Part shown: in pieces, positions 16,637 through 45,972 of the stretch
Layout: the number at the start of each line of letters is the position of its first letter
Position numbering within the stretch: position 1 is the first letter of the stretch
Sequence record: ON568341.1
Reading direction: 5' to 3' (one strand)
DNA: 64,000 bases
Notes under the pieces: generated by a model
What the model saw: only the letters and a program-made list of their open reading frames with translations
The model's database searches: none
Told to the model about the DNA's origin: nothing
Made by a program: the position numbers and the translations under genes

Positions 16637-16662
16637 AAAGGGAGCCTTAGCTCCCTTTTTTT
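16637..16662. terminator. Bidirectional terminator between convergent gp46 and endonuclease VII
   Basis: AAAGGGAGC-CTTA-GCTCCCTTT with T-tract; loop contains the minus-strand stop. Confidence 0.85.
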
Positions 16663-17138
16663 ACATCAACCATATTTAATTTACCGTCCTTAATCAGCTT
16701 TCTAGCTTGTTTTGCACGAGTAGTAGTGTTACTGCCAGGGACAACTCCGAACCCTTCCAGAATCTCGTTTTGCTGCGTTGCTGGGAGCCTTTTAAATTTA
16801 TTAGTATCCACTGTTAGTGCCGTGTGATGTATAACTTGCTCTTCTGGTGGAATATTATTGTTCTTTTCAAGGTAGTCAGCAAGGTTGCGTAGTACTTCAT
16901 GCAATGGCTTATCTGTTAAATGACTAAGACAGCGTTTAAATGAATTTGCAACCCTTCCTTCCCATCCATTCACCTCATTTTGAAGAACCTGTCTACAATG
17001 TTGATTTCCACCATGATAGTGATCCAGAACTGGTTTAGTTATTTTTATGCCTATGATGGGGTCAATGCCATTTTGTTTATTTAGCAATTCAGTTCGATAG
17101 TTTGCAGCATCCTTACTATCTTTTAATCTTTTTTTCAT
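16647..17138 (-). CDS. gp49: Recombination endonuclease VII (Holliday junction resolvase)
   Basis: KPVLDHYH...CRQVLQNEVNGWEG...LRNLADYLE pattern of the EndoVII family. Confidence 0.8.
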   Translation of the reverse strand: MKKRLKDSKDAANYRTELLNKQNGIDPIIGIKITKPVLDHYHGGNQHCRQVLQNEVNGWEGRVANSFKRCLSHLTDKPLHEVLRNLADYLEKNNNIPPEEQVIHHTALTVDTNKFKRLPATQQNEILEGFGVVPGSNTTTRAKQARKLIKDGKLNMVDVKKGS

Positions 17139-17168
17139 AATTCCTCACCAAACTATTTGTCATCACAA

Positions 17169-17176
17169 TATTTATA
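17169..17176 (-). promoter_or_regulatory. Late promoter TATAAATA for endonuclease VII
   Basis: Perfect consensus ~30 nt upstream of ATG 17138. Confidence 0.75.
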
Positions 17177-17227
17177 GATTAGTTATTTGCAATATTTTAA
17201 GTACTTAATGAATATTTTATAAAAATA

Positions 17228-17257
17228 GTGAGACAACTTTAAAATTTGTGCTATAAT
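17228..17257 (+). promoter_or_regulatory. GTGAGACA-16-TATAAT promoter driving the putative ncRNA
   Basis: gtgagaca acttt aaaatttgtgc tataat; same class as promoters at 12527, 45943 and 56742. Confidence 0.8.
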
Positions 17258-17263
17258 ATTTGT

Positions 17264-17734
17264 TGTAGTAATGACAATCCTGTTGAATGCAGAAATGCAT
17301 ATAAATGAGAACCTGATCCTATCGAAAATGTAGATGGCAGATGAGCAGTTCAACAGTGCGATGAGCAGAAGAAACCCGTCAGATGTGGGCATAGTTTGAA
17401 CCCCTCACGGCAATGCGGCTCAATAAAGAACTCCGATAAGCATACAGAGAGTTCCTAGATAGACATATAAGGATCGCACCTTACCAGATTTGCTAAGGGA
17501 GTTTATTAAGTGATTTTAATAAACAGCCTGAAGTTTGATTGTATAGACTTTCAGGTGAGTGTCAGGATGATTAAGACTGACGACCGTTGCATATGACCGT
17601 GATAGGGAGAAACCGAGCAACCCGCTTCCGTTTGCGATTGATCTTTTTACAATATAGATCCGTCCAAAATTCACGATACAATAAATGCTGAAACCATCAG
17701 CGTCAAGAAATAGAGACTTCATTGTCTCTTTTTT
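17264..17734 (+). ncRNA. Putative large structured non-coding RNA of unrecognised family (~470 nt)
   Basis: Bounded by promoter and terminator, no credible + strand ORF, GC-richer than flanks, and about ten stems (e.g. 17280-87/17349-56, 17428-33/17449-54, 17501-09/17516-24, 17527-32/17550-55, 17687-91/17697-701). Confidence 0.6.
17712..17734 (+). terminator. Rho-independent terminator ending the putative ncRNA
   Basis: AGAGAC-TTCATT-GTCTCT followed by a T-tract. Confidence 0.75.
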
Positions 17735-17740
17735 ATTGTC

Positions 17741-17950
17741 TTCATTCCCCTGCGGGGGGATGAAAATGTCCTCAACAAATCCCGTCAAGTATTAAATCTT
17801 TTAAAGTTCTTTATAATTAATTTAATGAAATGAATATGAGTTACGTAGTAACGAATATTCTTCAGCTAACGAATGAAATGAGTTAGATGAATCCAATAAT
17901 ATTAAAATTAATTCTTCCATAATTCAATTCAAATAATTCTGTAGTTTAAT
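17741..17950. other. G6 hairpin plus AT-rich repeated tract; candidate replication origin/unwinding element
   Basis: TTCATTCCCC-TGCG-GGGGGATGAA hairpin, then AT-rich DNA with direct repeats AATGAAATGA, ATGAGTTA and TAACGAAT (each twice). Confidence 0.4.
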
Positions 17951-17951
17951 G

Positions 17952-17980
17952 AAAAAAAAAACCAGCAACAATGTGCTGGT
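17952..17980 (-). terminator. Rho-independent terminator of gp26/gp51-like operon
   Basis: ACCAGCA...TGCTGGT stem then a long T-tract on the minus strand. Confidence 0.85.
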
Positions 17981-17990
17981 CGTGTGGGAT

Positions 17991-18200
17991 TTAGTGCTTC
18001 TCGTTTTGTTTTTTAATTTTTTTATTAAAAGACTTAACTAATAAGTCTCTATCTATTAATGGCATATTAAGAAGTGTTCCGTAATCAATATTATCCATAT
18101 ACACAGAACACTCCATTAGTGCATTTTTGATTTCTGACTTATTCAGTTCTATCTCCTTCAGTACTTCTTGTATTTCTTCAGGAGATGACTGGAGAAGCAT
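17991..18200 (-). CDS. gp51-like baseplate hub/tail assembly protein (possibly the frameshift extension of the upstream ORF)
   Basis: YGTLLNMPLIDRDLLVKSFNKK pattern; TAATG overlap; no SD visible upstream. Confidence 0.6.
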   Translation of the reverse strand: MLLQSSPEEIQEVLKEIELNKSEIKNALMECSVYMDNIDYGTLLNMPLIDRDLLVKSFNKKIKKQNEKH

Positions 18201-19036
18201 TACTCGAAAAAATGACTAGGATCATATTTTAGTCCATCAATTTCCCATTGATGATTACATCCATCACACTCAACTTCCATACTATGCGATACTCCAATTT
18301 CAAGTACTTCATCCATTTTTTCACGAATTAGTTTAAGAACTCCTTTTGATTGTTGTCCAAGCCACTCATTAATGAATTCTTTTTCAACTACTTCATCACC
18401 ATCTGGAGTGATGATTTTTGCAATAACTCCACCAATCATATCAAAGTTTAGTTGTGCCATATTTTCAAATACTTCAGAAAATATTTTTACTTTTTCGTCT
18501 TGTTCAATCTCAGCAGTTTCTAGAAACTTAGTTTTCTGCTGCTCACTGAACATACGCTCAGCAAACGATGAATATTCTTTCCATGTTAGTGGTCTAAACT
18601 CTAAACGTAGTCCATTATCTAAATCAATAGATGGGATTTCTTCGAATGCTTGTGCAGTTTCAAGAAGATATGATAGATTACGTTCAAAACGACCTTCTTT
18701 TTCACATTCAGGACATACAGCGTTAATATCATATGTTTCTTCTTTAGATGCAACTTTAATAGCAATAAGAAGCATTTCAACGTCATTTACATATAACTCA
18801 TCAGCATCAATAACATTAGGAACACAGTTTTCAATGACACGTGATACTGCATCGCCGTTTAGTAACATATCTGGTGTATTGAGTGTCATTTCATCACGTG
18901 CACTACGTGCACAAACGCCACATTTGACACCTTTTGGACCTAAAACTCCGTCTTTATAAGGAATAATGCCGTTAGTAACTAATTTTGTACTGATCTCTTC
19001 AATTTTAGTGTACTTAGCAAGTGGATTCATAGCCAT
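18200..19036 (-). CDS. gp26: Baseplate hub assembly chaperone (gp26-like)
   Basis: ARDEMTLNTPDMLLNG, DVEMLLIAIKVAS, two CxxC motifs (CPEC, CDGC). Confidence 0.8.
   Translation of the reverse strand: MAMNPLAKYTKIEEISTKLVTNGIIPYKDGVLGPKGVKCGVCARSARDEMTLNTPDMLLNGDAVSRVIENCVPNVIDADELYVNDVEMLLIAIKVASKEETYDINAVCPECEKEGRFERNLSYLLETAQAFEEIPSIDLDNGLRLEFRPLTWKEYSSFAERMFSEQQKTKFLETAEIEQDEKVKIFSEVFENMAQLNFDMIGGVIAKIITPDGDEVVEKEFINEWLGQQSKGVLKLIREKMDEVLEIGVSHSMEVECDGCNHQWEIDGLKYDPSHFFE

Positions 19037-39620: not shown

Positions 39621-45972
<6,352 letters not shown>

Follow-up and report, generated by a model that had tools for sequence, protein, structure and literature searches.

A family of large pseudoknotted RNAs in RaK2-like jumbo phages

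What occupies the 850-nt gap that lies between an endonuclease VII (EndoVII) gene at its left and genes of the baseplate hub side at its right in Escherichia phage UE-S1 (ON568341.1; Asteriusvirus, a RaK2-like jumbo myovirus)? We analysed the last 64 kb of this record, here called the window (64,000 nt; window position = record position minus 294076). A reading of the sequence alone, made without database searches, had placed in the gap a highly structured RNA of about 470 nt, bounded by a promoter and a terminator, and had taken it for an undescribed large phage non-coding RNA (ncRNA). The comparative analysis supports that proposal by fold, by covariation and by the lack of any match in Rfam or the literature, and we are highly confident that the gap holds a member of a functional structured RNA family not yet described. 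How such an RNA might act is the second question that this locus raises.

A structured RNA read from the plus strand

The stretch stands out in composition, as the sequence-only reading had noticed: its guanine-plus-cytosine (GC) content is 0.39-0.45, compared with 0.25-0.34 in the flanks. It also folds better than dinucleotide-shuffled controls. The minimum free energy on the plus strand is -125.1 kcal/mol versus -104.2 +/- 5.7 kcal/mol for 100 shuffles (z = -3.69), and the corresponding z for the minus strand is -2.39. Covariation in the homologues is very strong. RNAalifold, given 23 diverse copies, proposes 78 pairs, 54 of which show compensatory double changes. A curated model of the 23 copies comprises 101 pairs in 19 helices, with four pseudoknots; scored on a MAFFT alignment that was not fitted to structure, it has standard pairs in 94.1% of cells, as opposed to 38-42% after a shift of the 3' partners by 1-3 columns, and in 73 of the 101 pairs both sides change. 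Its covariation score of 0.50 compares with 0.06-0.09 in these shifted controls, and none of 500 shuffles matches any observed measure. Because G.U and U.G cells (159) far outnumber A.C and C.A cells (31), the plus strand is fixed as the RNA strand. A covariance model of the 3' domain (R1, 154 positions) finds all 38 copies at E values of 1e-22 to 1e-36, scores one copy cut by a contig end at 7e-16, aligns them with 92.8% of cells paired, and detects nothing besides family copies in ~490 kb. The plus-strand transcript is under strong selection for its 19 helices, including the four pseudoknots, and for a set of invariant junctions. The case for its expression rests on the conserved promoter and the strand-specific covariation.

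Could the stretch be no functional RNA at all: a chance fold, a decayed or small coding region, or a repeat at the DNA level only? Short hypothetical open reading frames (ORFs) are annotated here in some GenBank records, and the UE-S1 record marks 17274-17431 (record 311350-311507), which is part of the RNA gene only, as an unnamed repeat_region. Against this stand the 73 compensatory pairs, the strand-specific G.U excess, the absence of a conserved ORF and indels that do not come in threes. A non-functional or coding region is excluded in practice, and we give it next to no credence. The impression that there is no credible sense ORF held up, as no ORF is conserved among 27 copies of the RNA; the longest one over it, 90 aa on the minus strand (17516-17788), is only 45 aa in the 96%-identical 121Q ortholog. 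A Shine-Dalgarno-like G6 run plus AUG was rejected as a coding start, since in the alignment the frame differs between orthologs. Other GenBank records either leave the gap empty or cover the RNA gene with two to five short hypothetical proteins, which are probably artefacts of annotation; recognition of the RNA corrects the annotation of spurious hypothetical proteins over this region in dozens of records.

Does the RNA belong to a known family? At gathering thresholds, cmscan with Rfam 15 (4227 families) gives no match in the whole window. At E<=10 the interval 17100-18050 yields only terminator- and promoter-like chance matches outside the core, and at E<=1 no match falls inside the RNA at five homologous or paralogous loci. 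The families without a match include GOLLD, ROOL and OLE, to which the sequence-only reading had pointed, as well as HEARO, raiA, RNase P, tmRNA, group I/II introns, T-box, riboswitches and known ribozymes. ARAGORN finds no tRNA or tmRNA genes in the window; together with the Rfam search this agrees with the initial view that hallmarks of tRNA, tmRNA, RNase P and group I/II introns are missing. A group I intron was considered and rejected, the RNA lying between complete genes and having no Intron_gpI match. The element goes unmentioned in the genome papers on RaK2-like phages (CBB, UE-S1, fEgEco12, EJP2 and others), and full-text searches of the literature, with sequence strings as well, turn up no description. 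The family of large pseudoknotted jumbo-phage RNAs is real and strongly supported, and as far as tools and literature reach it is undescribed. By a loose definition it is a large ornate ncRNA, being longer than 400 nt and having extensive covariation, pseudoknots, conserved unpaired junctions and no coding capacity, and its covariation support is as good as that of the OLE, GOLLD, ROOL and raiA classes.

Architecture of the core

The helices and the other features of the locus are collected in Table 1. The analysis goes beyond the initial reading in three respects: each genome carries two to five paralogous copies, several of the stems first listed are pseudoknots, and the conserved unit runs past the terminator. 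The proposed stems CTGTTGAA/TTCAACAG, GAACTC/GAGTTC, CCTTA/TAAGG, GTTTATTAA/TTAATAAAC, CCTGAA/TTCAGG, GTCAG/CTGAC and GTTGC/GCAAC, as well as the terminator stem, all reappear in the covariation-tested model. Stem CTGTTGAA/TTCAACAG is real but also a pseudoknot, for the loop of a covarying hairpin provides its 3' strand. Three further stems, TGCA-GAAA-TGCA, GATCT/AGATC and GCTGA/TCAGC, belong to hairpins that all copies have but that differ in length or register. A suggested end-closing pairing of GACAAT with ATTGTC was abandoned, as the alignment shows no counterpart in homologues. Two other candidates were likewise rejected: an 8-nt complementarity (17258-65/17773-80) occurs in one lineage only and probably lies upstream of the transcription start, and a pairing of the 5' arm of the last core hairpin with the second copy of the twin motif (Table 1) is feasible in copies of the GAP32 type but fails in the window copy.

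Table 1. Features of the RNA gene and of its neighbours in the window
Feature	Position	Strand	Remarks
Promoter	17228-17257	+	-35-like GTGAGACA, 17-nt spacer, TG-extended -10 TATAAT at 17252-17257
Core RNA, ~470 nt	17265-17736	+	From predicted start to terminator U-run; fold, covariation, G.U excess
Pseudoknot 1	17281-17355	+	TGTTGAA (17281-87) with TCAACA (17350-55); helix 1, 5/7 compensatory
GNRA hairpin TGCA-GAAA-TGCA	17288-99	+	Enclosed by pseudoknot 1
Hairpin H3, loop GAAAAUGUA	17313-23/17333-40	+	Enclosed by pseudoknot 1; helix 2, 7/8 compensatory
Hairpin GCA...TGC	17345-47/17357-59	+	Loop holds 3' strand of pseudoknot 1; helix 3, 2/3 compensatory
Long-range helix TGAGC/GCTCA	17362-66/17418-22	+	Region of model helices 4-5
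CCGT/ACGG	17376-79/17407-10	+	Inside TGAGC/GCTCA; region of model helices 4-5
Hairpin GAACTC/GAGTTC	17428-33/17449-54	+	Region of model helices 6-9
Pseudoknot 3, loop AGCA with TGCT	17439-42/17491-94	+	Loop of hairpin GAACTC/GAGTTC; region of helices 6-9
Hairpin TAAG/CTTA	17468-71/17480-83	+	Region of helices 6-9; domain 17428-17494 also holds invariant CUAAGGGAG
Hairpin GTTTA/TAAAC, variable-length arm	17501-17524	+	Helix 10, 5/5 compensatory; carries the portable sub-module in GAP32, CBB, BF, Yen9-04
3'-domain hairpin	17525-36/17545-56	+	Loop engaged in pseudoknot 2
Pseudoknot 2, ATTGTAT with ATACAAT	17538-44/17676-82	+	7/7 compensatory, 99.4% of cells paired
GTCAG/CTGAC	17561-65/17577-81	+	3' domain
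Pseudoknot 4, GTTGC/GCAAC	17586-90/17617-21	+	3' domain
CGTGA/TCACG	17598-602/17671-75	+	3' domain
GGGAG/CTTCC	17605-09/17625-29	+	3' domain
Arm with portable sub-module	17632-36/17663-67	+	3' domain; GCGAT-hairpin-CCGTCC (17634-65)
Last core hairpin GCTGA-AACCA-TCAGC and twin motif copy 1 CATCAGCGTCAAG	17687-17707	+	GAYGM/KCGUC in most copies
Weak intrinsic terminator AGAGAC-TTCATT-GTCTCT-TTTTT	17712-17734	+	6-bp stem, 6-nt loop, T5
Post-terminator tail	17746-17789	+	C4-TGC-G6 hairpin, invariant GGGGGGATGAA (17747-64), twin motif copy 2 AATCCCGTCAAG (17778-89)
Downstream module	17830-17890	+	Hairpins GAGTTAC...GTAAC (17838-52) and CTAAC-loop-GTTAG (17865-87)
Left neighbour, endonuclease VII	16647-17138	-	phrog_423, 4.6e-32; UE-S1 annotation
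Right neighbour, terminator	17960-17981	-	Convergent with RNA
Right neighbour, conserved 69-aa ORF	17991-18200	-	Convergent with RNA; PHROG matches of right neighbours: phrog_150, phrog_18291
Right neighbour, gp26-like baseplate hub gene	18200-19036	-	PF12322, 1.1e-23; convergent with RNA

The clearest single element is pseudoknot 2, a 7-bp pairing of a hairpin loop with a distant strand, which other copies realise as UCGAAU/AUUCGA, CUUGAAU/AUUCAAG, UCAUAU/AUAUGA or UUCGCAU/AUGCGAA. In the last core hairpin, a change of GCGUC to GCUUC in RaK2 is compensated by the 5' arm, as read from the alignment. Between the helices lie the invariant unpaired strings GAAAC, AACCCGC, GACCGUU, CUAAGGGAG and GAUAGACAUAU, and loop GAAAAUGUA is invariant as well; such strings are of the kind that could make tertiary contacts or binding sites.

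The periphery is more variable. The inner CCGT/ACGG arm is swapped for CCG-UUCG-CGG in two paralogs (L020, L047). A portable sub-module, GCGAU-hairpin (loop UACAAUAU)-CCGUCCAAAAUU, forms an arm of the 3' domain in the window copy and sits on another arm (H9) in the orthologs of GAP32 (L002, about 1650-1700), CBB, BF and Yen9-04; it is a swappable peripheral element.

Promoter, paralogs and the conserved tail

The interval is found by blastn against phage records in 72 genomes, with an identity of 85-100% within Asteriusvirus and of 70-79% in Mimasvirus (GAP32, CBB, XbC2), Eneladusvirus (BF, Yen9-04, pEa phages), Munch-like and Erwinia phages; what can be recognised in Alcyoneusvirus (RaK2, K64-1) is a core of 70 nt. 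Nucleotide conservation covers all RaK2-like genera and extends to unclassified relatives. A genome has 4-5 matching places (1-3 in records of the RaK2 group), and the family as a whole comprises two to five dispersed paralogous copies per genome, four in Asteriusvirus. The complete Asteriusvirus genome of EC22.5-2 has exactly four, at 89.9, 143.3, 223.1 and 333.2 kb, all on the plus strand, which bears most genes; the copy at 223.1 kb is the ortholog of the window copy. The order EndoVII-gap-small ORF-hub is kept in GAP32, CBB, BF, EJP2 and Hallingskeid, and the best matches in XbC2 and RaK2 are paralogs, because they lie at other loci. In a tree of 23 copies, the paralogs of BF, Yen9-04 and XbC2 that adjoin an ADP-ribosylglycohydrolase gene group together (100/99 support), apart from the EndoVII-hub orthologs of BF, Yen9-04 and GAP32. 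Since the paralogs cluster by locus across genera, the duplication is older than the split of Mimasvirus and Eneladusvirus. A scan of IMG/VR with a 17-nt core pattern, followed by nhmmer, yields 32 loci with full or partial units, and a scan of JGI metagenomes adds four members. For bacterial genome contigs, one of the first 120 pattern matches listed is real and the others are chance 17-mers; the real one lies on a 68.8-kb contig of a Buttiauxella metagenome-assembled genome and is presumed to be phage DNA. As far as sampled, the family is confined to RaK2-like jumbo phages of Enterobacterales.

The strong promoter assigned to 17228-57 is recovered by a scan with a score of 10/12 (GTGAGA/GAGACA, spacing 16-18 nt, TG-extended TATAAT), and the same architecture is kept in front of every copy of the family, predicting a transcription start at ~17264-17267 in the window. 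It is a member of a recurrent phage class, G(A/G)GACA-N17-TGnTATAAT, of which six more drive other genes in the window, all on the plus strand (12548, ~36050, 45889, 45964, 51913, 56763). The class is of the extended -10 type, and host sigma-70 RNA polymerase should use it. Promoters of the class often have an A-rich tract upstream, and those at 45889 and 45964 stand in tandem.

At the other end, the terminator foreseen at 17712-34 is present, but it is weak (6 bp with three G-C pairs, and U5) and does not end the conserved unit. Its stem is helix 18 of the model, with five of six pairs compensatory, and the hairpin is absent or degenerate in 6/23 aligned copies. In the 17 copies that have it, the terminator arms are no more complementary to the 90 nt before them than in shuffles, so we see no attenuator switch. 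A classical riboswitch or attenuator would be recognised by mutually exclusive terminator and antiterminator pairings and by a coherent set of downstream genes. Here, six copies have no terminator at all, no exclusive pairing appears, and the downstream genes vary (ADP-ribosylglycohydrolase, methyltransferase, hypotheticals) or, at some copies, are absent or convergent.

Might the RNA nevertheless work in cis, as a promoter-proximal leader whose fold stays with the transcription complex or the nascent transcript? Either host RNA polymerase would be made to read through the weak terminator and later ones, in the manner of processive antitermination by HK022 put or EAR, or the long early transcripts from these promoters would be stabilised and licensed. 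The layout fits: as in put and EAR, a promoter-proximal structured RNA is followed by a terminator and stands ahead of unrelated genes. The unit always begins with the promoter, and at paralogous loci it points the same way as the next gene and reaches right up to that gene's ribosome-binding site (ADP-ribosylglycohydrolase, the Yen9-04 methyltransferase, hypotheticals). A weak terminator comes right after the fold in 17/23 copies and none in the rest; the downstream genes are unrelated, which suits a general transcription device and not a metabolite sensor; and ancient conserved positions fit a locus-bound role. However, the genes towards which the window copy and all of its orthologs run are convergent late genes of the baseplate hub, and no gene on the plus strand follows. 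At 470 nt with four pseudoknots the RNA is ~7 times any known antitermination RNA (put and EAR RNAs measure ~65-120 nt, versus ~470 nt here), no similarity to put or EAR is detected, no alternative antiterminator/terminator pairing exists, and elsewhere in the window promoters of this class occur without the element. We regard a leader function, the main rival of a trans-acting RNA, as unlikely, though by no means negligible.

The right-hand boundary that the sequence-only reading had set at the terminator proved too short, as conservation extends to 17789 and more loosely to ~17890. The tail beyond the terminator is unique in the window, and nearly all copies share the same GGGGGGAUGAA in its C4-N3-G6 hairpin. 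A twin motif, A(U/C)C-N(1-2)-CGUCA(A/G), at 17695-17707 and 17778-17789 brackets the terminator and the C4/G6 hairpin. Its two copies change together: both read CUUCAAG in RaK2, and AUC becomes ACC in both. Such co-evolution in sequence identity suggests a shared partner, which could be a protein, an RNase or a common pairing strand; a mutual-information search for a pairing partner of the 3' tail gave a signal dominated by phylogeny. The downstream module that follows has, in relatives, two or three C-GAA-G triloop hairpins with the loop motif GAACGAAGUGA, and its stems vary in a compensatory manner (CAUUC/GAAUG, CAUAC/GUAUG, CUAAC/GUUAG, CAAUC/GAUUG). In paralogs the module directly adjoins the ribosome-binding site of the plus-strand gene that follows. 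Stray copies of tail or downstream-module sequence lie on IMG/VR contigs at L066:8797-8841 and L012:11308-11350; each of these extra copies is a few hundred nt past the main unit, so that the 3' modules can also stand alone. In Yersinia phage fHe-Yen9-04 (L005:2128-2934) a plus-strand adenine methyltransferase gene is inserted directly after the RNA unit and is probably expressed by read-through from the RNA promoter.

An invariant tail in DNA that lies past a terminator calls to mind a transcription-primed replication origin. The 3' part of the transcript would form a persistent R-loop at the T-run and C4-G6 and be processed to a leading-strand primer, as in the ColE1 RNA II pre-primer or, more loosely, T4 oriF/oriG, and the twin ATC-N-CGTCAAG repeats would be protein-binding sites. 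ColE1 RNA II is ~550 nt long and uses a G-rich/C-rich RNA-DNA contact; here the start lies ~490 nt before the invariant G6 run, a T-run is present, the structured transcript is likewise the functional product and the phage encodes RNase HI together with replication and recombination genes of T4 type. The promoter is obligatory. The 4-5 dispersed copies stand 50-110 kb apart, all in the direction of bulk transcription; the flanking repeats of the post-terminator DNA co-evolve in sequence identity, as repeated protein-binding sites do; and the sequence that comes next is AT-rich (GC 0.26). In T4, oriF neighbours genes 25/26 of the baseplate hub cluster, and the window copy stands beside the gp26 hub cluster as well, in a phage that replicates in the T4 manner and has several dispersed promoter-dependent elements. 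The primer idea, one of the functions first suggested for the RNA, is thus more attractive than expected.

The same comparisons also count against it. T4 origins consist of a promoter and an unwinding element with an R-loop primer and have no conserved RNA structure or sequence family, whereas here the RNA fold is what is most conserved. Neither they nor an R-loop primer model needs 19 helices, four pseudoknots and invariant junctions, and we know of no R-loop origin that requires so elaborate a fold. From ColE1 RNA II the unit differs in its pseudoknotted core, its multiple copies and its residence in a T4-like phage that replicates mostly by recombination, and there is no homology between the two. 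A conserved antisense gene of the RNA I type was not found, the minus-strand promoter-like sites at 17565-17538 and 17706-17678 lying in sequence that varies among copies and the covariation being specific to the plus strand. The repeats number only two, ~80 bp apart, and are not an iteron array. Cumulative GC skew is featureless at the four sites, a weakly informative result for recombination-driven replication, and no positive evidence of initiation at these sites emerged. We consider an origin function rather improbable; if it is true, the units are phage replication origins with a pseudoknotted pre-primer RNA, which would be as novel as a ribozyme or RNA assembly.

The twin motifs admit another reading, in which the RNA is a self-processing ribozyme, or an intron-like or mobile RNA element: cleavage or ligation at the CGUCAAG sites would free the RNA itself or the ~80-nt segment between them, or the unit would have spread formerly as a mobile cassette. 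Ribozymes typically have this kind of architecture, rich in pseudoknots and with invariant nucleotides at the junctions, and two identical, co-evolving short motifs do bracket a segment; the portable sub-module sits in different arms in different copies, and a free-standing HNH homing endonuclease adjoins the gene in some phages. On the other hand, no ribozyme or intron model matched, there is no interrupted host gene and there are no exons, and the loci are stable across genera, so mobility cannot be recent. The strings CAGAUGAG and GAAAC, which resemble a hammerhead, vary in the alignment at positions that a hammerhead cannot tolerate, and were rejected as such. We place very little weight on this reading.

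A possible trans-acting RNA and its relation to other systems

What, then, might the RNA do? With confidence that falls a little short of even, we favour an RNA that acts mainly in trans through its fold. It would work by its three-dimensional structure and not by antisense pairing, either binding proteins as a scaffold or decoy, or being itself an "ornate" RNA capable of catalysis or self-assembly, and it would be produced early and in quantity from several genes. Because the weak terminator appears to be leaky, the same promoter would also feed the downstream module and, at paralogous loci, the next gene; at those loci processing would set the RNA free, with the twin CGUCAAG motifs as possible sites, and otherwise termination would do so. 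A more specific version, in which 4-5 genes express a ribozyme or an RNA-only or ribonucleoprotein (RNP) assembly early on, so that a host process is taken over or shielded, we advance as a doubtful though reasonable possibility.

Several observations sit poorly with a trans-acting product. Two of the four Asteriusvirus paralogs and several other copies have no terminator and run straight to the ribosome-binding site of the next gene, and in terminator-less copies the RNA is physically a 5' leader. A free-standing RNA that ends at the terminator leaves the invariant post-terminator DNA unexplained, and the twin motifs co-evolve in sequence, not in complementarity. Dispersed copies at loci conserved since before the genera split fit a role in cis at least as well as one of dosage. 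Finally, the searchable literature holds no transcript, 5'/3' end or abundance data for RaK2-like phages.

Large, intricately folded RNAs of bacteria and phages are rare, and nearly all of them (OLE, GOLLD, ROOL, raiA) have no known function, partly because their organisms are hard to manipulate. The present family resembles GOLLD and ROOL in being several hundred nt long and phage-borne, in having many covarying helices and pseudoknots, and in having its own promoter and no associated protein gene. Unlike them, it occurs in two to five paralogous copies per genome, its gene does not stand beside tRNA genes, and its hosts are jumbo phages of Enterobacterales as opposed to Lactobacillales, rumen or lake bacteria; cmscan detects no match in sequence or structure. 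GOLLD and ROOL are large "ornate" RNAs, often borne by phages or prophages, which cryo-electron microscopy has shown to form RNA-only multimeric cages (bioRxiv 10.1101/2024.12.08.627333). The two to five ancient paralogs, the shared core with swappable peripheral arms, the four pseudoknots and the invariant post-terminator tail make the family unusual. Any one of three readings, be it a trans-acting RNP or ribozyme, a transcription device or an origin pre-primer, would if true add a new element to jumbo-phage biology, and if it is a ribozyme or RNA assembly, a large "ornate" RNA would for the first time be at hand in an E. coli phage system amenable to genetics. Since the phages grow on laboratory E. 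coli K-12 (for example Sharanji on MG1655), deletion, complementation, pull-down and structural work are straightforward.

A possible parallel comes from PA5oct, a jumbo myovirus and distant relative, for which RNA-seq has defined four intergenic ncRNAs, ncRNA001-004, of 236-619 nt (PMC7318152). None shows homology to the present family by nhmmer or by covariance model with filters off. The longest, ncRNA004 (L086:1117-1735, 619 nt), likewise lies between structural genes in a convergent slot, and has a C-run/G-run hairpin, UUCCUUCCC-AAAC-GGGGAGGAA, at its end; it may be analogous to the present RNA, or related to it but too diverged to be recognised.

Two minor observations concern the left flank. 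A perfect 9-bp bidirectional terminator at 16637-16658 lies between the convergent gp46-like (Rad50-type) gene and the EndoVII gene. In some relatives, a gene for a 318-aa free-standing HNH homing endonuclease (phrog_559, 1.8e-66) stands between EndoVII and the RNA gene, as in EC22.5-2 (L081:26076-27032) and Munch (L006:513-1469, CPT_Munch_274); UE-S1 is without it (window about 17139-17227). Such an insertion beside the RNA gene is typical of homing next to a highly conserved target.

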